A stretch of 63,971 nt of DNA, counting the filler, from Reticulomyxa filosa (Eukaryota; Protista; Foraminifera): NCBI GenBank assembly GCA_000512085.1. It is 16 parts of 16 records of this genome, joined end to end, with 100 filler letters (N's around TTAATTAATTAA, not from the genome) between each part and the next. Parts side by side here need not be neighbours in the genome. Positions count along the whole stretch, not along the records: positions 5,749 to 13,612 come from ASPP01027610.1; 15 more parts are not named here. The stretch is one strand, 5' to 3'. Shown one piece after another: positions 1 through 13,612 of this stretch. The first letter of the stretch is position 1, and each line of letters begins with the position of its first letter. A model generated the notes under the pieces. The model saw only the letters and a list, made by a program, of their open reading frames with translations. It had not been told where the DNA came from and made no database searches. The translations under genes were made by a program, and so were the position numbers.

Positions 1-128
1 TAAATAAAGTTATCTATTTTTTTTTTTATTGTATTCGTTTATATATGCGATACATATGTATACATACATATACATATATATTATAAACATATATACATAT
101 ACATATATATATATATATATATATATGT

Positions 129-1098
129 TTATATGTTTATATGCGCATTTATGTATATACTATTGTATATAAACAAACCCATGTCTTTGAGCATGTCTTG
201 TATTCTTTGAGTGAAATCTTGATTAGTGGCAGTCAATTTGTCATTGTTGTCTTTGAGCAACAAGTTTTCCATTTCCACCTCTTGCTTTTGCATCGCCAAA
301 ACCTTTAGCTCTTGGCCTTGTTTTTGACAGGTGTCCTTCAGCAATAAGTATTGCTCCTTCATTCGATTGTACTCTTCCGTCACCTTGGTGTTCGAGTGCT
401 CCAATTCACTCAGCTTTTGCTCCATCGCTTTGTACATTGCGAGCTGCTCCGACATGTCCTTCAGGCGGTCCTCTTTGCCTTCCAACTCCGTTTGCAATGT
501 CTCTGCTTTCTGCTGTTGCTCGCTCAAGTCGTGGCTTAACACATTTTTTGTCTTTATTTATTTTTTTTTAAAAAAAAAAAGGTACGTTAATATTTCTTGG
601 TATTATAGTTTTTTTTTTTTTTTTTTTGAGGTTCAGTTGTCCCCCCCCTCCCTTTTTTTTTTTGTTAAACTAAAACTTGACTTGGCTTAAAAGGTCATAT
701 TTGTCTTGCAAATATTTCACTTGCTTTGTCAAAGTGTCAATTTCCATTTGGTACTGCTCGATTTTATTGTAGTTCTGACGAATCGCTTCTCCCTTGTACT
801 GATAGCTTGACAGCTGCGACTCCAAACTGTGACACCTTTGCTGACATGCTATCAGCTCTTGCTTGCCCTTTCGGTACTTTTCCTCTATTATGCGCAGTTT
901 GTCTTGCAACATCATCTGCAAAAACAAATCTTGGTCTGCATTTGGAGCCATCCAAGATACATGTTACACATACACCGTCAAACAAACAGTCCACTAGTGT
1001 AGTACCAGAGAGGATTCTGCAACCCCAGTGGGCTTTGGGGGTGGAGCTGAAAAAGGTGCTGGTCCTCTTCGATTAGTTGCAGGATTTTGCTGTGACAT
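129..1098 (-). CDS. Coiled-coil protein, multi-exon, 3' partial
   Basis: ORFs 670-951 and 129-542 are E/K/Q/L heptad-rich and separated by a poly-A/T intron-like block. Candidate ATG at 1098 (MSQQNPATNRRGPAPF). Exon boundaries not resolved. Confidence 0.6.
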
Positions 1099-1923
1099 TG
1101 GGCTTGCAATATATATGTATATATTATATATTGGCACCCTTGAATCTTTGAAAGTTTTTAGCCACATACATATTGCAAGTTTACACTTATGCGATCAACA
1201 AAAGCGTAAGTTTTAAATTATGGTGTTTTTTCATTATTGAAACTGAACAAAATAAATGTGTTACTTCTATGTATTGTTCACAATTTTGCGAATGGCGGTG
1301 TTCCAAAGTTGGCAGAATGATTGGATTTGGAAGTCGTACTTTTGGTTTTCTGTGGACTGCTTTTGTGTGTAATTGTCATTCCAAACTATCTGGCTTCGCC
1401 TAAATTCATTCATCCAAATGTGATATGCCCGCATTATTACATTTCTCATATGAATTATCTCATATAATTTTTGTTTGATAGCCCGAGTAGTTGACACTAT
1501 CTGTACCTATCAAAAATTTTGGCACGTGTACACCTTTTATCTCTCACTTGATGATCCAGATTTGCACTTTCCACAATATGCATCAAGATATATGTTTTTT
1601 TTGTTAAATGACAATATTCTTTTGTAAATGTTTTTGAAAGTATCTTTACGTCGAAAATTCTATTTCCTTCTAACAAATCATATTTCCACAAAATAAGCCA
1701 ATATTGACTAGAAAAAGAGCAAAATGTGTTACGCGTTTTAGACACAACAAAAAATATTTACTGAAATCCAAAAACGTTCAATAATGGAAGGGCTGTGCCA
1801 AACTTGGAAATCGTGGAAAAATTCCAAGGACAAAAAAAATAAATGAACTTTACAAGTTCATTCAATTCAACCAGTGTCCACAACACAACATCAGACACAA
1901 CAAAATCGTCTGCATCACATTTT

Positions 1924-3864
1924 TTAATCAGAAAGCGAAACAAAGCGTTCTTCAATATCATCTGCAAGTTTTTTGAAGAAGGCCTTAATGTCTTCTCTGC
2001 TGGTTGATGGGAACACGTCCATTTTGGATGAAATGACGCGTTTAATGACTTCATCGCAATGCAATTTGATAGCGTTCAGGGTGATTTTGTGTTCTTCCGT
2101 CGCCTTGTCAATTGCAGCTTTGGATTGACGATAAAAGGTAATAATGCAACGCAACATTCCCACCGTTTTTTCCAAAGGACACATGTAATCATATTCAGTA
2201 TACGCATTTTGTTGAAGAAAATCTTCTCGGATGATTCTTGCCACATCCAAAATGAGCTTTTGATCTTCACTGAGTGAGTCTTTACCGACCAATTGCACGA
2301 TTTCCTGCAACTCGTTTTCGCTTTGCAAAATGCTTTGTGCTTGTCTTCGAAGTTCACCGTATTCGGTATCTCGTTCGTTAAAGTAAGGTTCCAACACGTT
2401 CATATATTTTGTGAAGGAAATGAGCCAATCGACCGAAGGGAAGTGTTTACGTTGGGCCAAAGGTTTAGACAATCCCCAAAACACTTGCACAATGTTCAAA
2501 GTGGCCGTGGTGACCGGGTCAGCAAAATCACCACCAGGAGGAGACACGGCACCGACAATGGTGACACTGCCTTCTCGTTCGGGGGAGCCCAAGCATGACA
2601 CACGTCCAGCGCGCTCGTAAAAGGCAGCCAAACGGGTGGCCAAGTAAGCAGGATAACCACTATCTGCAGGCATTTCTCCCAAGCGCCCACTGATTTCTCG
2701 CAGAGCCTCTGCCCAGCGTGACGTGGAATCAGCCATCATGGCCACGTTCATTCCCTGGTCTCTAAAGTATTCGGCCAAAGTGATACCCGTGTAAATGGAG
2801 GCTTCTCTGGCAGCCACAGGCATATTGGGGGTGTTTGCGACCAAACAGGTACGCTTCATGATACCTACTTCACGGCCATCCTTGGTTTTCATTTTCATTT
2901 GTGGGAAATCGCGCAACACTTCAGCCATCTCATTACCGCGCTCTCCACATCCCACGTACACGACACAATCACAGTTACTATGCTTGGAAAGGGATTGGGA
3001 AATGACAGTCTTACCGCAACCAAATGCTCCAGGAATGGCACACGTTCCACCTTGGCACGAAGGGAACACTGAATCCAACACACGTTGTCCGGTCAACAGC
3101 GCAACTTTGCCTGGCAACTTTTCGACCACCGGTCTTGGGAAACGCACTGGCCAATTATGGGTCATGGTCAGATCAACCTCTTTCCCTGTTTTCGCATGTT
3201 TCACTGTCAACAACACCTTGTCAATGTTGTACGATCCAGAATCAATAAAGTTCGTCACGGTACCACCGATTCTTGGAGGAATCATTATTTTGTGCTCCGG
3301 GAACAACTCGTTCTCAAACACTACTCCAATCACGTCTCCTGGTGATACTAATGAACCCTTTTTAATCTTTTCATTTCTTGTAAATTTCCATTCCTTTGTG
3401 CGATCCAGCGCAGACATTGTCACTCCTCGCGGAATGAACACTGCACTACCTGTCTCTTTGAGAGACAATTGTGCTATTGCCTCCAACGGTCTTTGAATCC
3501 CGTCAAAAATATTCTCCAAAATACCTGGACCCAATTCCACAGACAATGACTGTCTGGTTCGCAACACCGGGTCTCCAATTGTCAGTCCTGCTGTCTCCTC
3601 GTACACCTGAATGTACGCTTTTGATGTCTCCAAACGGATAATCTCACCCACCAGTTTTTGTTTGCCGACTCGCACCAGCTCATACATAAACGCTCCCAAC
3701 ATATCGTCGGCCACCACCACTGTGTTTATGTAAATTTTTTTTTTTACACCCTTTTTACTTTTTCATTATCGTATATGCCACCTACAACAACGTTGTTGTA
3801 ACACTTAACATGGCCCTGCCACTCGTAGGATGAAACCAGTATCCTTTGACTTTTCCTCGGACAT
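1924..3864 (-). CDS. ATP6V1A: V-type proton ATPase catalytic subunit A
   Basis: Exon 1 3864-3810 ([18 protein letters not shown]), GT-AG intron 3809-3720, exon 2 3719-1924. Motifs: P-loop [57 protein letters not shown]. Confidence 0.97.
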
Positions 3865-4935
3865 ATTTTATTGATTTATGGGAAAAAAAAACAGGAGAAC
3901 AGGCGATATAAAGTTTTTTTTTTTCGAAGAAAAAGCTGTTTGGAACTAGAAAAGCACTGCTGTCGTGGAAACTCCACGATTGTGATAGAAAAAAGTCAAA
4001 TTTCTAGTAACGAGTGAGTGCTCTTTTTTCATTGATTTTTTATGCTCTTCAAACTAACACGCCAAATGAATCGGTTGTGGTACAGATTTGTACATTTCTT
4101 TTTCGGCCTCTGTAGCTTCTGTGTTGTGCCATATTTTAATATTCAATTACGAAAGAATTGAAACTACTCAAGGAACATTTAAACATTGTAACTGATTTGA
4201 GCTATTTTCCAAATGTCCAAGCTATCGTGTCTGTGCATCGGATTTTGCTAAGTGATCTTAATTGTAACATAATGTGATAATTTGTATATGGCGAAAAAAT
4301 ACAAAGAATATGTGTGTCACATTAAAAGAAATATTTTGACAAGTATAGAACAAAATACCATTGACAAATCATTTCCACAACTAATTTATTCGCTGAAAAA
4401 AAGAAAAAAAAATATTGTAAAATAACTACCTTTCCATTAATAAATAGTAAATCATTTTCATACGATAAAAAATTTTTGAGTTTGCATTTAAATAACAACA
4501 ATATTGTCTAACGTAGTTAGTGGAAAAAATAAGACCTTTACTTAAACTTTAATATTAATGTATATATGTTAATTTAAATTTAATTTGTTTTCACTTCAGC
4601 TACATCTGATAGTAAACATTCAATGTTAGCTAAAATAGTCTTATTGTACCATAAAAAAATAACAATCAAATGTGCTTGATTGTTCGACAACAAACTATTA
4701 AAAATGTGCTTAGCACTCAAAGAAAACTTGGAATAAATTCAGGAAAGTGTGCCGGTTCACGAAATTGTAATACAGAAATAATGTGCTTTGAGTGAAGTTT
4801 CAAATAGTGAAACAAGAAAAGTTGAGTGTAAGTGAGGGATGCATGAGTTTGTAAATTTTTTGTAGTGGCAAGGTAGAGGGGGGGGAAAAAATGCAAGTCT
4901 GTGTAAAGAGCTTCATTGTATAATAAAAAAAAAAG

Positions 4936-5648
4936 ATGGATAAGAATCCAAATCAATCCAACCCGCTTGCAACAAAATCAATGAATGTTTCTTCATCAAC
5001 AACAGATAAATTGTCAAGACCAAGAGTGACAACAGCAGAAACAGAACGTTACTTGATGCAGCTATTGAAATATCGAAATATCTCTTGGCGATACCTGTTG
5101 TGTTATTGCCTGCCTCTGCAGCAACAAATACTGTTAGAGCAGTTGCGGAGCAACGAGACATACAACGCGAATGAGAGTGAGAGCGTGTCAAGAAAAGAAG
5201 AGGAAGAAGAAGCAGACGACGACAATGACGACAACGGAGACGACGAAGAGATCAAGAACGAGATATCAGTGACAGAGGAAGAGAGAAGCAGGAGCACATT
5301 GACCACACTTTCTCCGACGATAGAAGAAGAGTCAGAGACAATGGAAAGAGAAAGTGAGACAAAGTTTAAGTCGTCTTCCATATCCCGAGCAGAGACGACC
5401 AAACAAAAGGGAGCGTTTCAAAAGAGTATCTCTCAAAGCAAGTTTTACCACCTGCCAGTCATTGACGGCAACGCATTGAAGACATTATTCGAGCAAGGTC
5501 GAGAAGAGTATAACCAATTGAGTCAATTGTATTTGACCCCAGATCAAATAGTATGTGGTTATTTTTACTTTTATTTATTTTTTAAATTTATAATCTTTAA
5601 ATATGTGATATTATCTAATCACACATAAGATATAAACATTTTGATTGG
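4936..5648 (+). CDS. Hypothetical protein, possibly the N-terminus of a TBC/Rab-GAP domain; partial
   Basis: RNISWRYLLCYCLP and LFEQGREEYNQL resemble the TBC N-terminal RxxxWxxLLgyxP...reeY pattern, with an acidic insert between them. Intron begins near 5551 (gtatgt). Cut by the contig end. Confidence 0.4.
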
Positions 5649-5748
5649 NNNNNNNNNNNNNNNNNNNNNNNNNNNNNNNNNNNNNNNNNNNNTTAATTAA
5701 TTAANNNNNNNNNNNNNNNNNNNNNNNNNNNNNNNNNNNNNNNNNNNN
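5649..5748. other. Artificial contig-joining linker (N44-TTAATTAATTAA-N44), first of 15
   Basis: Identical 100-nt spacer with six-frame stops at 5649-5748, 13613-13712, 33675-33774, 38091-38190, 41254-41353, 43381-43480, 44545-44644, 48496-48595, 52401-52500, 54411-54510, 55850-55949, 58298-58397, 59656-59755, 60987-61086 and 62546-62645. Confidence 0.98.
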
Positions 5749-8076
5749 GTCTTGATCAGGAGTGAATGTGTTATAATCGTAGATAGCGTTATCCATCTCG
5801 ATTGTTGGCAACCATGTGATTTCTTTGAAGGACCTGTGTATTGATGGCAATAGCTTAGATGAGGATAATGCGGATGCTATGAATGCTGCGGCAGCGTATG
5901 GCCTGGCTGTTTTTAATCCAAAACCTCCTTGACGAATGGGGAGTTGACATTGGATCCATTGCTGCGAAGAGATGGGGTAAGCTGTAATTGCCTCCATTGT
6001 CTGTCTTATCTTGCCATCAAATCTTTTGATCCAACCAGAATTATAGCCGGAGAAATTTGAGCGGATGTAGTAATTTACTTTGGCCAGCTGCAATGAATTT
6101 CTTAATAGTAGAAGCATTGTTTGGGCATGTCTCAATGCAATAATCCTATCAAATTGTGAATCCCATTCCTTCTGCCTGATATCCATTTCATCCTTGATAT
6201 GTGCTGTCCTACCAACGGGGATGCTAACCAAGGTCGTGTCGAATGTGGTGTTATGCGTGATACCAACAAATTGATTCGGTGGAGGCGCAGACAGATTGGA
6301 AATCCACTCCGTCTTGGAGTAGTTTATTTCAATACCGTGGGACTGCTTAAGCGCTTCGAGTGATGTCATTGCGAGGATGATTGATGCGGACGATGTTGAG
6401 GCCAAAGTCAGATCATCGTGGTACGCCGCGTGGTAGATATTTTCCAAGCCGGCAAGTGCGGTCTTCAATGTGTCTGCTAATATTATAGCAAAAAGGGCAC
6501 CACTTAATGGATCACCTTGATGGACGCCCGAACATGATTGAATCGAAGATTGGTTCGGCAAGAAGATTGGGACGTGTGACGAATAACAACCCTTCACATA
6601 ACCAAACAAAGCGGGGATCTGCTTTCTTACCAACTCAATGAGCTTGCTCCTTTTACACGCGTTGAAAGCGTTTTTAAAATCAACCTTGACCGCCACCGCA
6701 TCATCAAATGGTTTCACATATTGGAGAATGGCTTTGAAGCCATGAACGAAGAGTTCGATACCGGCGCTTACGTTAATTCCGAATTGATTAGGTCCAACAA
6801 TATGCTTGATATGGTTTGAGTGCCTTTTCATCAGGATGGCGCCTGCCGATCTTCTTAAAAGGGATCCGATAGCGATAGGTCTTGGGCTCCCGTCGGGTTT
6901 GGCTATTCCAATGAGCCTTGCTCCGAATGCAATTGGGGCGGCGCTTTCACACACTGATCCGTTGACTATTAATGACAATACTTTGGCCCAGTTAGACAAT
7001 GTGCTTGATTCAAACTCAAATGGAACAAGGTCGATTAAATGTTGGGCGGTGAAAAGGTCTACGCCTCCAGCGGATGTTCTTCCTAATTTCTTAGTGTACG
7101 CAATGAGTTCTTCTACTGTTATGTCGTCATGCGGGGGGATGGAGGGTAATCTTAGTGTCTGGTCGTTAGTTTCAATTGATTGCAATATTTCACTTGGAGG
7201 AGGCTCATATGGGTGCTTATTTTGTAATTGTTGGATCGTGTTATTATCGTATATGATACCTTGGCTAGGAGATAATGCCTTGAAGGCTTTGGATAATTCA
7301 CCTAAAGCTGCAAGTTTAATTGCCTTTGCGTGTGTAGCGTTTGCTTCAGCTTGGCTGGGCGGCTTCGTCCGTTTTAATTCGTTCGCTTTTATAATCTCCG
7401 TGGAATGTTCAGAAAAGTCGAACCAAAGCTTCTGGATATTGTCCTCCTTCCACAGCTTTATCCTATTTAAAATGGATTTGGCCACTGAATTGACGTGTTT
7501 TCTTCCACCTCTCCCTGGGTCCCATAATAAAAGCCTTGTGAGTAGGAGCCATTTGGTCCAGGATGCCGTGTCATTTTTGGACGCTACCTCTTTGAGTACC
7601 CATGCTGCGAGCGATGCCAATGAACTGCGTACATTCTTTGGAACCCTGCCAATAATTTTCGCCGGCTTGTTGATTATTTCGGTAATATCAGGCAGTTGCC
7701 ATGGGATGATTGCTTCCGCTTGCTTTTGCTCTGTGGAAGTTTGTAATCTGGATCTGCGTTCGCGGAAGGCCTTTTGCTGTGCGATTAAATCGTCATGGCA
7801 GTTCTTGTGCATGTTATCAACGGCCACTGTGCGAGGCAATATACGCCTACAACGGTAACAAACAATTCTTCCAAAACTCTGAAAATATGATTGAGGGATA
7901 TGTGCAGTGGCTTCGTTGGCTGTGTGGGTGTTGACGTGAATATGCAATCCAGCTTCCGATTTGAGGACCGATGAGCAACCAAGGACAGGACACTTAAAGA
8001 TGTTACTGTTGTTTGGCACCTCCGACCTGGGCGGATGGGGCAAATCGAGAGGGAGCTCGGGGTTGAAAGCGAACAC
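5749..8076 (-). CDS. Retrotransposon Zn-finger + reverse transcriptase (CRE-clade-like), C-terminus missing
   Basis: C2H2 finger CPVLGC-x12-HVNTH (7992-7924) and CYRC-x13-HKNC. RT motifs: SAGGVD, RLIGIAKPDGSPRPIAIG, NQFGI, KVDFKNAFN, GVHQGDPLSGALF, YHDD (6423-6412), GIEINYSKT, and downstream LPIRQGGFGL typical of CRE-like elements. No ATG precedes the zinc fingers in this frame. Confidence 0.93.
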
Positions 8077-8817
8077 TTCTCGTCGTCAAATAGGTTAGTC
8101 GACTGCAGGTCTGCGCTTGGGGCTTCTGTGATGGAATCGTTTGTACATTGACTAGCACCAAATGACGCAACAACATGGGTAGTATTGTATTCTGCCATCT
8201 TATGCTCCGGATCTATACCTATGGATAGATGTTCGGTGGTATGCTCAATGTACGGAGGCAGTTCATTGATTGTCGAAAGACCAAACGGTTGTCCAAGTGC
8301 ATGTGGTTGCATACAGGGCTTCTCGTACATGCTTGGGGCACGGTGGATGTGTATGCGGTTGTCGAAGTGGCGTATGGGTTACGGTATCCTCGATCACGTG
8401 TTGGACTGCTTGATGTACTTCCGATGTGCCCATGATATTGTCGCTGCTACCTTGAGATGTTGTTTGAAGGTTGATATCATTGATGTTGATTTCCGTTGTA
8501 GTAAGGCACCTTGTGATCTTTTGAGAAATGCTTTCGTCGTTGCTGTCTGCAGTGGATGGATTGTCGGTGGCATGCGTGAGTTTTTGAGTATCCGGACATT
8601 GCAATTTACTACGATCATTGTCTTGGATCAATGATTGGATATTAGATTGTACGGTTTGTGTTGATGGCCATCTCGGACTTGAATCATTATTACGGACGTC
8701 GCGATTGGATGTGCTGGTACGCTTATTGTTACCGTGAATTTCATCAAGGGCATCACTCGAAGGCTTTATTGGCGATGGGCGACTGATTGCTATGTTAGGT
8801 TCTTTCGGTAGTAATAT

Positions 8818-9834
8818 AAGGCGTGAAATATCAGCTGCAAATTGGAGAACGTCGTCAGTCGAAGAAGCCATTTTGACGGTGGGGTTGATTGAGAATATTA
8901 CTGATATGTTTGACGACTTTGCCAAACATGACAGTAAGGCCTTCCTCCATTCACTGCAGCCGTTCTGGTCTCGATAATTAATTTTAGATTTATTAAAGTT
9001 TTTTAAGATGGCCTGGAATTGTTTTAACCCTGAGGAAACACATGCTGACTCTAGGCAATGCAAAATTTCATTATGAATATATGTTTGGTTTTTAAAGTGG
9101 TTGAGAGGACGAATTATATTTTTTGAAATTACCCCTGCTAAATTAATTATAAAAATATTGCTTTTCATTTGAGAGACCTCCTGGTCGCTACTAACAAAAG
9201 TTTGGCATATAGATACATAAATATTGTATGCCCAGGGGGGGGAGGAGTGTCCAGAAGTTTGGGTATGATGTTGCAGATGTGATGCTTTCCTGGCGTCTGC
9301 TAGCAATTTCTCCAGATCCATGATGTTGTCAATGTTCTTGCTTGTAAGTTTTAATAAATTAATCGACGTATGGCCCTTCTTCTGATCATTGGTGGTTGCG
9401 TGGATATTAGTATTATCAAGGAGATCATATGCCCGAATCTTTGATATATTAGTTCCATAGAATTCAACTGCAGACAATTTTAATATAATGGTCAATGCAC
9501 GTGTGCCCTTCAATAGTTCACCCACCGTGAGATTCAATGCTGGTGTAATAAGATCGCTTGTTAATATTGAGTCCAATACGGATGGCTGTTCATAGATGCA
9601 GATTATACCGGATAATCCGTCGAGAGCCTTCTCTGATATCGAAATTACGATTTGCGATATGGCTTGCTTGGGATCGATTGATGCATCGAAGACTTCGTCA
9701 AAGGGGCAATAATTGCCTCCTCTTGGCGTGGTTCCGACCCTTGTGGATAATAGGTTCTTGGTGATTCTAATGTATTGCTCGTTTTTACCACTGAGCTCGG
9801 TATCTTGAATTAAGGCATACGTTTTTATCAGATT
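8818..9834 (-). CDS. Degenerate kinesin motor domain (pseudo-motor) within the retroelement reading frame
   Basis: About 339 aa with kinesin motifs in the expected order: NLIKTYALIQ, PFDEVF, ALDGLSGIICIYEQ, LSAVEFYG, AYDLL, HTQTSGHSS, SNIFIINLAG, INYRD, LAKSSNISVIFSINP, STDDVLQFAADISRL. The P-loop GSGKT, switch I SSRSH and switch II DLAGSE are all disrupted. Confidence 0.8.
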
Positions 9835-12800
9835 GCTATTTTGCTGCCGGGCCCATGAAGGAATTGACAATTTGCTGTCCGAATGGATAACTGGATGAGG
9901 AATGTTCGAGATTGTGGTATGATTGGATGATGATGTTGATAAGGGGACCTTATGGCTGCCCGTGGATGTTCGACTGCGGGAGTGCAAGTGGTTTCACTAG
10001 CAGCATCAGCCGTGTACGCAGCACGGGATGCCTGTAAATCCACTACACATTCTTTGACGTCGACGTCATGATTTGGTTCGGTTATGGGATGCAGCTTCGT
10101 GCTCGTGGTTGCTTGGGGAGGAAAGATTGCGGATTGGTTGTCGGCAGGCGGCTCGATAGATTGCTTGGTCAATAATTGGCCTTGGTTTGCCAGTTTTGGC
10201 GCGGGAGCATGCGATGATGAGAGTGAGTGGCTTTGTGATTGTTCTTTCTGATTGTTGCTTTGGCTTTCGTCAAAAGGCTCGCGGGGTTCTGGTATGGCAT
10301 CATGGGTGGCCCTCTGAATAATTGTTTATCGGGGGGACCCAATTGAAGGTTATCAATTACTGACGGGACAATATGTTTGATAGGTGCCTTCGACTGCATA
10401 GACTCGGAGAGACACGTGGTGTCACTGGCAGCATCAGTTGTGTACATAGCACAAGATGCCCGTGGGTCCACTGTCTGCTCCTTGGTGTCATTGCCATGCC
10501 ATGGTGCTTCTACGAGGTGGTGGCCCGTGCTTTCAACCATCTGGGGCGGGATATGTTCTTGCGTCTGTTGAGAACTCTTTGCGTCCGCTATGGGGGCAAT
10601 GTTTGGATGTGGCGGGGGATATCTGCATTACTTGCATTTTTTTGGAAGGGTGTTATCCCCGTGGGCTGATGCGAGCATTCGGCGTTTACTAATTCATTGA
10701 TGGACTTCAATTCTTGGCTCCGCTGGCTCGCGAGAATGCTGTGGGGCTGTTCGAATGAGTGTACAGGCTCTGATGTGGCTACGGCCATTACTGGATAGTT
10801 TGGTTGCTCCCTCGATACTGGCGGTGCTTGGAGGAGGGGCATGCTGGCTGCGCGGGGGGATTTGATGTGGCATTACCCACGTGCTGCTTGGAAGGTTCCA
10901 TTGGAGGCGTGGTTGTTTGGTTATAGTTATCACTAAGCCCGTTACCCGCCTCAGGAGCCAAGGTGTGTATTGATACTTGACCAATTGAGATACCACTAAT
11001 ATCGTCCAAGATGCGATGGACTACAGGGACATGTACTTCGTCAATGACTGTTTCTGTTCCAATTGAATTGTTGATATTACAGGTTTGCTTTGATCTCCTC
11101 GACAGCAATTGATCCATTTGGTCTCTACCATGCCGTTCTTGCGAGGGTTGCTGAGTTGGTACTTTAATACGACTGGATGTATTCATATAACGCGAGGAAG
11201 TTCTCCTGGAGGGAAGATTTCTGGCCGAGAGCCTGCGCTTGTTGATGTATACCGAGAAATCTGCATCATCGAGGTCCGTTTCTGACTCTGCTTCAGCGGG
11301 GGCATGGGATTCTTTGCTTGACGAACTGTCATTAGCGTCGTCTTTGTTGTTGCTCCTGGGGTGCTCCGGGCTGGGCAGTATTTCGTCTTCGGCGGCTTGG
11401 CTCAGTGGTGGCACATTCTTCATAGCCTTTGAAAAAGGGTGCTGTGCTTGAGACGGCGATATTGAGCATCCCTCTTTTTGCAGCGGTTGATGTACGTATG
11501 TTGTTATTGATGGCGGTACATTGCACTTGTCGGGTTTCGGTACGTCCATGCATTCATCTTCCTCCGGGATCGCAGGGGGCCGCACGGCGGATGATACTTC
11601 GTCGATACTCACTTCGAACTGTCCCTGATCTGGGGAGCTTTGTCGTTGGATTTGAAGCGATTGTTGTGGGCGGGGCCAGGGCTGCGGTGCCGGTCCTGCC
11701 AATTCCTTCATGAGTGGTATCCGTTTGGTTTCTTGCGAAGGGGGAGAGGTTGCTTTCTGTCTTTGATTCCCACTTGGGAAGGTCCAAGCACTGTCGCTAT
11801 CAACCCCCCACTTACTACTTTGGCTTTGGGGCTGTGTGAAGTGAAGAAAATGTGTTGTATGCCCTTCGTGAGTAATCTTTGCGAGATGCAAGATTCCTTT
11901 TGCGATTTCCGGGATGCAGTTAGCTTCACGGCAGTGGTGAGTCTCTGTGCCAGTTCTACTTCTACTACCACCATTAAGGATGATATCGGTACAATCTTGA
12001 AAGGGGACGTTCCTCGAATTGCCGCTCTTTGGGGCCTGATGACGTTCAGTGTTTTGATTATCGCCCGCTTTATTTTCACTCGCCGCTCCTTCTGCTTTTA
12101 TTTGTCTCGATGGCTGTTTTTCAATAACCTGCCTTGACGCTCGAGCTTTACTTTCTAATGCATTTTCGAATGGATAGGGCCCAAACTTGTCGTATTGCGT
12201 TGGACTGGTGCACGCCTGTTCCCGATTCGCGCTTGTGAAATCCCAGATTGGTTCATTCTGCACCGCCGTCTGGCTGATTGCCTGAAAATTGTTTGTAGAG
12301 GGCATGGTAACGTCGGGTTCTGGCTCGCAGTGTTGATTTTTTGCTATGTCGGGCCCTGGTTTGTTGGCGATTGGCCGCCTCCCGGTTTTCCCAAAGTATT
12401 GCGATAGTGGTAGGGCGGCATTAGGTGACCGGCCTTTTTGACCATTATCGTCCAAGTTTTGCACGATAGTATTAGTTGTATATGAGGATTGTGCTACCAT
12501 TGCTGATCCACTTTCACTATGTATGTTAATAGAACTGCGATCTGTTATGAGGGCCGTCCGGGCATTACTTCCCGATGATAACTTTTCAATGTGATGTTGA
12601 TGATCTTCCTCGAACTTTCTTTTAGGAGTTCTCCCTGAACTTTGGCCACTTGCTGCTTGAGTTTGTCTGCAGTGTGTTTTCATTGGCCATTTTGCCTCCA
12701 ATAGCATACTTGAGTCAAAAAATTGACTTTTTCCTATGCATTCCTCATGCTTCTCTGCCACCAATTGTGGTATCACTTTTTCAATGGTTTTGCTCTCGCT

Positions 12801-13612
12801 GCCGTTCGTTTGAGTTAAGTTTACTCGGGATTTTGGGGCTTGAACTTCTGTTTCATGGCGATCTGTTCCTCAGTTCCCCTTCTGCAATTCATTAAATATG
12901 AGTTTTTTCCTGTGCAGCAAGGCAAAGTCAAGCTTTTGAATTGTTCGCTTAAGTTTTTCCTTTTCCGAAAGTGCACTGTCATCGTTCTCGGCTTCTCGAT
13001 TTGGGGTTGATTGTATTCGGCCTTGCAGGTTTGAATACTGGCTTTCCCCAACATGAGCCGGCTGCGGTTGACTTTCGACTAGTTGTTTTTCTTCCACACA
13101 ACTAGCAATCTTCGATTTTCTTACTAGTTGCCTCTCATCTTGTTGCCCTGCATCTGTTGGTTTTGCTGCTAACAAACTTTCCGCAACATCTACACTGACT
13201 AGTTGATCTCGACTCGTTTGCCTGATACCACCCTGTTTTTCCGCATTTTGTGCACCTAACTGTTCTGCGCCCTGCTGATTTGCAGTTACTCGTTTTTTTG
13301 TTGTTTGTCCGGCAATTATTTGTTCTGCATTCAATTGTCTGTCGCCTGCCTGATTTTCCACTACTTGAATTCCAACTGGTTGTATTGTCGACCTGTCTAT
13401 ATACGTATACTTGTCTTTATATCGATTTTCCGCTTCTTCGTATAGCAGGTGTGGGTAGGTCTCGCTTTTCCTATTTTCTTTCTTTATCTTGTTTTTATGA
13501 CAACTTGCGTTTTTACGTACACCTTTTGCTTTTGCACCCGGTGAGTTCTGGAGACTGCCAAACAACAGTTTCTTTTTGGCTTTGTTCTCAACCAAGTAAC
13601 CAACATTAGAAG
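9835..13612 (-). CDS. Low-complexity (S/Q/P/T/N-rich) N-terminal part of the retroelement polyprotein, interrupted
   Basis: Open from the contig edge. A single in-frame TGA at 12872-12870 separates the 241-aa and 662-aa ORFs. Further 1-nt frame changes near 10854-10859, 10614-10618, between 10170 and 10325, and near 9943-9946. Confidence 0.65.

Follow-up and report, generated by a model that had tools for sequence, protein, structure and literature searches.

A kinesin-derived domain in a retrotransposon polyprotein

Can a retrotransposon carry a kinesin in the same polyprotein as its reverse transcriptase (RT), and is such a kinesin still a motor? The question is raised by contig C27610 (ASPP01027610.1) of the foraminiferan Reticulomyxa filosa. 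Bases 1-7864 of this contig (7,864 bases) occupy positions 5749-13612 of the window, by which we mean the whole 63,971-nucleotide stretch of joined genome parts that was analysed. The assembly (GCA_000512085.1) comprises 101.9 Mb in 50,809 contigs. A preliminary description of this DNA proposed that the entire contig is one minus-strand coding unit, a retrotransposon without long terminal repeats (non-LTR) with a captured kinesin motor domain in its RT polyprotein. We found that the element is a non-LTR retrotransposon with a kinesin-derived domain in its polyprotein, present here as a decayed copy.

All of the long open frames of C27610 are on the minus strand. The open reading frame (ORF) at 8263-9987 matched the Pfam Kinesin family PF00225 with E=9.7e-10 and 38.4 bits (curated cut-off 29.3) over profile positions 43-324 of 327. 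The ORF at 5749-8076 matched RVT_1 (E=1.9e-19), and the RT catalytic motif YHDD was read from its translation. The earlier reports of a kinesin-like domain 5' of zinc fingers and RT, and of an RT with a YHDD motif, are borne out by these matches, and the TGA described just upstream of 8076 is at 8086-8088.

It had also been proposed that the RT depends on the upstream kinesin frame. The two ORFs share a frame, and they form a single ORF in related copies described below, but in the window they are separated by six stops (8088-8265). A third frame is open across this stop-bearing stretch (7785-8330). A frame map of the whole contig revealed at least six disabling lesions, namely an in-frame stop in the upstream coding region (Table 1) and frame changes near 10790-10630, 10328-10171, 9996-9830, 8381-8265, and 8088-7787. 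One of these is clearly a mutation: the peptide YTADAASETTC is read in the kinesin frame in relatives and in another frame in the window. Because these stops and frameshifts are spread across the contig, the window copy is decayed and is not one ORF; the common strand of the proposed coding unit was correct and its continuity was not.

Recurrence of the kinesin-RT linkage

The kinesin-like domain of the window had 49 matches on 36 contigs of the R. filosa assembly. In two of these contigs a single uninterrupted frame matched both Kinesin and RVT_1: C29371 (L029), with a frame of 1379 amino acids (aa) that runs off the contig, and C25516 (L030), with a frame of 1831 aa. Their kinesin-like domains are 62% and 48% identical, respectively, to that of the window, and they scored 34.3 and 42.1 bits against PF00225. 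Both Pfam domains are also present in the existing precomputed annotation of an NCBI hypothetical protein, RFI_29435.

The same order of parts was observed by tblastx on L029 to L035. On 17 contigs a kinesin-type domain precedes the finger-RT part in the same orientation (C27610, C29371, C25516, C34136, C41850, C23640, C3761, C6809, C19337, C25996, C27115, C2760, C33883, C45651, C26273, C25431, and C4819). This list was built from the coordinate tables of the genome search and from alignments; C2760, C45651, C23640, C3761, and the RT part of C33883 were judged from the coordinate tables alone. In the broken copies L015 (C26273), L049, and L051, stops were read as X, and each copy was analysed as it is, with its frames unrepaired.

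One alternative is that there is no fusion at all, and that host kinesins lie by chance beside inserted retrotransposons or that short contigs were mis-joined. The high fragmentation of the assembly and the many host kinesins of R. filosa speak for this explanation. However, uninterrupted frames span the junction in L029, L030, and L015, the same order and strand recur on 17 contigs from lineages that are 25-60% identical, and the element-borne kinesins are intronless and form a group of their own. We therefore regard an accidental juxtaposition as scarcely credible. The kinesin-RT linkage recurs on 17 contigs and in several deep lineages; it is therefore real, and neither a chimeric contig nor an isolated case explains it. 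The claim that the two domains belong to one polyprotein stands.

The RT part had at least 72 matches in the genome at 38% to 100% identity. Many of these have stops and a few are near-identical, with matches of 89-100% beside many decayed ones. Old and young copies together make the pattern of a retrotransposon family. It could be argued instead that these sequences are a domesticated host kinesin-RT gene family and not a mobile element, as some copies have very long intact frames and neither termini nor target-site duplications were identified. This is very unlikely in our view, because there are dozens of copies, most with stops or frameshifts and a few near-identical, because the putative endonuclease module is of a kind typical of site-specific retrotransposons, and because copies adjoin fragments of other family members.

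Two such neighborhoods were noted. L034 (C25996) contains, at 3-1073, the 3' end of the coding region of a distantly related member of the RT family (~38% identical). A window-type element follows it head to tail after ~700 nt, from 1784 onward. This single case may reflect insertion next to or into related elements, or tandem arrays. L046 (C27115) has a second kinesin-type fragment on its plus strand (1933-2310), 40% identical to the element's own domain, in the opposite orientation and downstream of the 3' end; this region looks like a cluster of element fragments.

A probable restriction-like-endonuclease element

C27610 stops before the C-terminal part of the polyprotein, which is present in other copies. 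The L030 frame runs ~430 residues past the RT, and its end shows, by inspection, a C..C..H..C (CCHC) motif and after it RHD, PGD, D.GVTH, and K motifs. The same CCHC motif and RHD, (R)PGD, D.G(V/I)TH, and K motifs were recognised by inspection in L046. Yang, Malik and Eickbush reportedly described in 1999 a layout of the RHD...PGD...D...K type as the restriction-like endonuclease of R2-type elements. No Pfam match to an apurinic/apyrimidinic (AP) endonuclease (Exo_endo_phos) was found in the frames of the window, L029, L030, or L046. The best sequence match of the RT in the PDB was the Bombyx R2 protein R2Bm (8gh6, E=5.5e-5). When compared to the Atlas, the C-terminal part matched only unnamed eukaryotic clusters, the nearest of which lists Euglenozoa as its commonest taxon, from one record. 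Judged by the motifs, the element appears to be of the restriction-like-endonuclease type (R2/CRE/NeSL group). The narrower CRE/SLACS assignment that had been proposed (CRE1/2, SLACS, and CZAR, which insert into spliced-leader genes) may hold within this group, the Euglenozoa record being a weak lead toward it. The C-terminal CCHC and endonuclease are represented by motifs in L030 and L046; a target site was not found.

The ~3.6 kb located 5' of the kinesin-like domain are weakly but collinearly conserved in L029 and L034, and this region is therefore part of the element. A candidate start, 'MASSREDD', was found in L034 ~10 codons past the window's contig edge. On this basis the full element would be about 9 kb in length and encode about 2,900 aa. 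The predicted order of the polyprotein is a disordered N-terminal region, the kinesin-derived domain, a variable linker, C2H2 and Cys/His fingers, the RT (YHDD), the CCHC motif, and the restriction-like endonuclease. Beyond the coding region, L030 and L031 remain alignable through their 3' untranslated regions until the L030 contig ends, apart from a 60-nt insertion in L031, and no boundary is visible; downstream of L046 the sequence is AT-rich and gave no information on the end of the element.

Overlapping ORFs in a -1 relation were observed in two copies. The kinesin ORF of L046 overlaps the finger-RT ORF by 316 nt (6992-7307), and in L029 the kinesin-RT ORF shares 115 nt (4025-4139) with an upstream ORF of 1109 aa. 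These overlaps could be programmed -1 frameshifts or simple mutations. At the matching places L015 and L030 have no frame shift.

The architecture resembles that of R2 (R2Bm, PDB 8gh6), R4, CRE/SLACS/CZAR, NeSL, and HERO elements in having one large ORF with N-terminal zinc fingers, RT, CCHC motif, and a putative PD-(D/E)xK-like endonuclease, and in showing no AP endonuclease. The R. filosa polyprotein is, in contrast, much longer (~2,900 aa by the above estimate), and its disordered N-terminal region exceeds 1,000 aa. We know of no restriction-like-endonuclease clade (R2, R4, CRE/SLACS/CZAR, NeSL, or HERO) that encodes a cytoskeletal motor domain. Accessory domains as such have a precedent in NeSL-1, which has an Ulp1-like protease. 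NeSL-1-like elements are similar in that a host-type extra domain is fused into the RT polyprotein; the R. filosa accessory domain, however, has the kinesin motor fold and is N-terminal to the fingers. A literature search identified no paper linking a kinesin domain with a retrotransposon polyprotein. The kind of element is already known, and a kinesin accessory domain is new for it.

The domain of the window's lineage is degenerate and conserved

To judge from its motifs, the kinesin-derived domain in the lineage of the window is a pseudo-kinesin and not the motor that had been proposed. Two alignments, one of nine copies and a broader one that included real kinesins, revealed that RxRP is replaced by YALI(Q/E/T)D in this degenerate lineage. 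The P-loop GxxxxGK[ST] (GQTxxGK[ST]) is lost, reading EQPSVLDS in the window, GQLLAPGL in L029, and GHHPIVNS in L030, as is the SSRxH of switch I (PPWAY, PSGHT, and IHGHT, respectively). Switch II (DLAGSE, DxxGxE) is degenerate, with NLAGVI in the window, NLVGET in L029, and DLVCEL in L030.

An AlphaFold2 (AF2) model of the window domain made on a deeper alignment had a predicted local distance difference test (pLDDT) score of 85 and a predicted template modelling (pTM) score of 0.85. A Foldseek search of the PDB with this model returned kinesin motor domains only (template modelling score ~0.65-0.72, probability 1.00, E ~1e-16). The ratio of nonsynonymous to synonymous substitution rates (dN/dS) over the domain was 0.14 for L030-L031 (dN 0.061, dS 0.437) and 0.08 for L030-L006; for deeper pairs dS was saturated and dN was 0.26-0.45. 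Ratios of this size indicate that the domain is not decaying freely, and the degenerate domain appears to be under purifying selection at a dN/dS of ~0.1.

Conservation within the degenerate clade was highest in alpha5 (0.77), L12 (0.70), beta7 (0.67), alpha6 (0.66), L8/beta5 (0.65), and alpha4 (0.59), and lowest in the P-loop (0.26), alpha2 (0.36), the switch I loop (0.39), and switch II/L11 (0.39). L8, alpha4, L12, and alpha5 make up most of the microtubule-binding face of kinesins, and L11 is also part of the interface. The pattern would fit a microtubule- or tubulin-binding module that no longer uses ATP. There are precedents for such a state: the motor-homology pseudo-kinesins Vik1 and Cik1 of yeast and the ATPase-dead KIF26 have a kinesin fold without a working nucleotide site and can still bind microtubules. 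We liken the window's domain to them by fold state and not by sequence, as a precedent for its possible role. Proteins of the Vik1/Cik1 type differ in belonging to the host and in working as partners of a true motor, whereas no partner was seen for the element domain.

Another possibility is that the domain is a passenger, a host exon or retrogene that was captured once and has no function for the element. The loss of all catalytic motifs in the window's lineage and the existence of a sister lineage without the domain (see below) are consistent with this. A passenger would be difficult to reconcile, however, with a dN/dS of ~0.08-0.14, with a domain that is full length and in frame across lineages only 25-60% identical, and with a flanking linker that evolves far faster (no tblastx match). 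We consider a functionless passenger very improbable, and hold with high confidence that the element-encoded kinesin-derived domain is real and is kept by selection.

Sister lineages with motor-like kinesin domains

A Pfam scan of the genome and follow-up alignments identified lineages of the same RT family in which the domain is more motor-like. C27115 (L046) has a 702-aa ORF with GRTGTGKS, SRGH, and DLASFSGE that scored 90.1 bits against PF00225, and this ORF overlaps, in the -1 frame, an ORF of 1108 aa that contains the fingers, the RT, and the CCHC and endonuclease motifs. In C26273 (L015) the motifs are GQTGTGKS, SSRGH, and DLASSE, and the C-terminal half of its kinesin, its fingers, and the start of its RT are in one frame. 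C35467 (L047) has GQTVSGKT, SRGH, and DCSGSE, and C33883 (L048), where an RT lies 1.2 kb downstream, has GQTGRGKT and DCAGSE. The P-loop is intact in L046, L015, L047, L048, and L050, and switch I and switch II are kept or nearly so in L015, L047, and L048. The order kinesin, fingers, RT was also found on C25431 and C4819.

A Cys/His-rich segment lies N-terminal to the motor-like kinesins of L046 (8785-9097), L047 (553-1000), L048 (8215-8442), and L049 (172-399). It is weakly ZZ-like (Pfam ZZ E 0.02-0.08, below threshold), and the window's lineage showed none.

Relatives and likely donor of the domain

The degenerate domain was compared, as a profile, to 1.84 billion representative proteins. 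Behind the element copies of R. filosa came kinesins of ~560-800 aa (most ~640), with E values of 1e-22 to 1e-10, in which an N-terminal motor is combined with a coiled coil. Their sources are metatranscriptomes and, for P0030, the foraminiferan Bolivina argentea. These orphan kinesins share with the element domains the signatures SSRGH, 'EAYG..V.RI..YDL', 'LEAGCIN.GL.QLQ', and 'G.GLRR.LHPF'. The SSRGH kinesins (P0025-P0058, including P0030) often have DCAGSE in switch II, and GLRR.LHPF replaces PYRDSKLTR. The family lies far from any kinesin of solved structure; P0025 had no match below 1e-30 in the PDB. They appear to be an undescribed protist family and are the likely donor of the element's domain. 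Assignment of the element domain to a named kinesin family was rejected, as L046 matched kinesin-5, kinesin-4, and kinesin-1 in the PDB at only ~1e-14.

Members of this family (P0025, P0027, P0033, P0041, and P0030) are the closest non-element relatives of the domain. Unlike the element they have the ordinary kinesin build of N-terminal motor plus coiled-coil stalk, without fingers or RT; the window's lineage, unlike them, is set off by a long stem (1.83 changes per site) and no longer has the ATPase motifs. A kinesin tree placed the element-borne domains inside or beside the SSRGH family, and the degenerate clade, on this stem, grouped with L046, L015, and L050 with 94% support in the Shimodaira-Hasegawa-like approximate likelihood ratio test (SH-aLRT).

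A tree of the fingers and N-terminal part of the RT has a branch with 99% SH-aLRT that parts all of the kinesin-bearing lineages from the kinesin-less P0003, P0005, P0006, and P0007. In a tree of the whole RT, L046 is basal in the R. filosa family (88/87). A single capture of the kinesin is the most parsimonious reading of these trees; both are compatible with it, the whole-RT tree adding one loss. A hidden kinesin in P0005, P0006, and P0007 was rejected, as none was found by hidden Markov model (HMM), hhalign, or BLASTP in their long N-terminal regions. These regions are disordered and have a Q-rich heptad-like repeat (NIQQMESNIQQSEHNIQRMDTNFQQMQSNIQQ...).

Distant metagenome relatives of the RT (~25% identity) have other accessory domains: P0011 a C-terminal ubiquitin carboxyl-terminal hydrolase (UCH, E=1.4e-39) and P0013 an N-terminal PHD finger. 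This group of RTs seems, by its domain content, prone to picking up host domains. Homologues of the fused protein, of the RT part, and of the kinesin-finger junction included no kinesin-RT fusion outside R. filosa, a weak absence given that foraminiferal genomes are barely sampled. The long matches in the search of 1.84 billion proteins were ordinary kinesins without a fusion.

Features of the window copy

The features of C27610 are collected in Table 1. No Pfam match was found in the low-complexity region at 10791-12869, which contains one conserved island at 10941-11375 ('RNLPSRRTSSRYM...'). All copies have a YT(A/T)DAAS(D/E)TTC motif 5' of the kinesin-like domain, and L029 and L030 read this motif in the kinesin frame. 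The window has two copies of it, separated by ~430 nt and read in different frames. A direct or tandem DNA repeat that would account for this doubled peptide motif was not detected, and the duplication is therefore old. The pair of fingers is conserved in L029, L030, L046, L015, L049, and L051.

Table 1. Features of the element copy on contig C27610, in window positions.
Feature	Positions	Strand	Basis or remark
N-terminal conserved polyprotein segment	12873-13610	-	Open frame; homologous to L034 1784-2638; about the first 10 codons lost at the contig edge
In-frame stop (lesion) in upstream coding region	12870-12872	-	Sole stop in that frame from 13610 to 10790
Long low-complexity region, probably disordered	10791-12869	-	36-41% matches to the L029 upstream ORF and L034
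Frame-shifted stretch with two YT(A/T)DAAS(D/E)TTC copies (10412-10444, 9984-10016)	9984-10444	-	Frame map
Kinesin-derived domain (predicted pseudo-kinesin)	8728-9840	-	PF00225, profile search, AF2 and Foldseek, motif table
Ex-P-loop CIYEQPSV	9577-9600	-	Motif table
beta4/L8	9448-9474	-	Motif table
Ex-switch II NLAGVI	9127-9144	-	Motif table
L12/alpha5	8932-8979	-	Motif table
alpha6	8824-8847	-	Motif table
Variable linker with six in-frame stops (8088-8265)	8077-8727	-	Open in L029 and L030
C2H2 finger CPVLGC...HIHVNTH	7924-7992	-	Translation read directly
Second, Cys/His finger CYRC...HKNCH	7795-7860	-	Translation read directly
Reverse transcriptase domain	6259-6906	-	RVT_1 E=1.9e-19; YHDD at 6412-6423
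C-terminal, thumb-like part of the RT, cut by the contig edge	5749-6258	-	66% identical to L030 residues up to 1563

Possible function of the domain

Non-LTR proteins tend to bind the RNA that encodes them. The cell of R. filosa is a large syncytium in which transport along microtubules is fast and runs in both directions (PMC13371060). Because of these two circumstances, we think it most likely that the element protein, assembled in cis with its RNA into a ribonucleoprotein (RNP), would be coupled to microtubules via the kinesin-derived domain. Such coupling would help the RNP to reach nuclei in a huge syncytial cell with microtubule transport. The tethering of the RNP to microtubules and its spread between nuclei that had been proposed may hold in the same way. 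In the lineages with an intact P-loop the domain could be an ATP-driven motor, while in the window's lineage it could be a nucleotide-independent microtubule- or tubulin-binding module. As a whole, our favored explanation, that C27610 is a decayed copy of a ~9-kb element from an R. filosa family of restriction-like-endonuclease non-LTR elements whose kinesin-derived domain couples the RNP to microtubules, seems probable to us. Taken separately, a role of the domain in microtubule binding or transport, which is suggested by the pattern of conserved residues, is tentative, with the chances slightly to the negative side of even. A more specific version, in which the P-loop-intact lineages (e.g. 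C27115, C26273, C35467, and C33883) encode a working kinesin that moves the RNP toward nuclei and the window's lineage is a later static anchor, strikes us as rather unlikely.

Several observations weigh against the favored explanation. Element termini, a target site, and a target-site duplication were not found in the flanks of L030, L031, and L046, and we infer transposition from the structure of the copies only. The AF2 model leans on an alignment that contains real kinesins, as the element copies alone gave a pLDDT of 46. L11, an element of the microtubule interface, is poorly conserved. The whole-RT and finger/RT-N trees disagree on the sister lineages. Finally, the sister RT lineage of P0005, P0006, and P0007 (RFI_30218, RFI_31151, and RFI_02897) does without a kinesin domain, so the domain is not essential to the RT family.

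It could be speculated that the domain is kept for a different role, as a scaffold for oligomerisation or the RNP, as a decoy or adaptor that hijacks the partners or regulators of host kinesins, or as a binder of free tubulin or nucleic acid. The destroyed nucleotide pocket of the window's lineage and the poor conservation of L11 agree with this, and the donor SSRGH family is without the canonical VPYRDSKLTR of L12/alpha5, so that its own microtubule interface is in doubt. On the other hand, conservation peaks at alpha4, L12, alpha5, and L8, and the full ATPase motifs of the sister lineages fit a cytoskeletal role better than a scaffold. We view such a different role as a minority possibility, and continue to favor coupling of the RNP to microtubules.

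Implications for R. filosa and for the element family

Passages in PMC4758236 (citing Glockner 2014) and PMC13746701 cite R. filosa for amplified kinesin-domain genes as an adaptation to large cell size. Element-type kinesin domains are present on at least ~36 R. filosa contigs, ~22 with the degenerate type and at least 14 more with the motor-like type, and part of the kinesin-gene count of this organism is therefore transposon copies. Counts of R. filosa kinesins need to be cleaned of these copies. If the P-loop-intact lineages encode a working kinesin, there would be a retrotransposon with its own motor, and part of the kinesin amplification would reflect transposon copy number and not host adaptation.

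The family offers a natural series of versions of one domain, from motor-like to ATPase-dead, that is open to simple biochemistry. It is known that retroelements and viruses use the motors of their hosts to travel along microtubules. A kinesin-derived domain encoded by the element itself, selected across deep lineages, would, if true, be a new solution to this problem, and one that suits an organism with a huge multinucleate cell run on microtubule transport.

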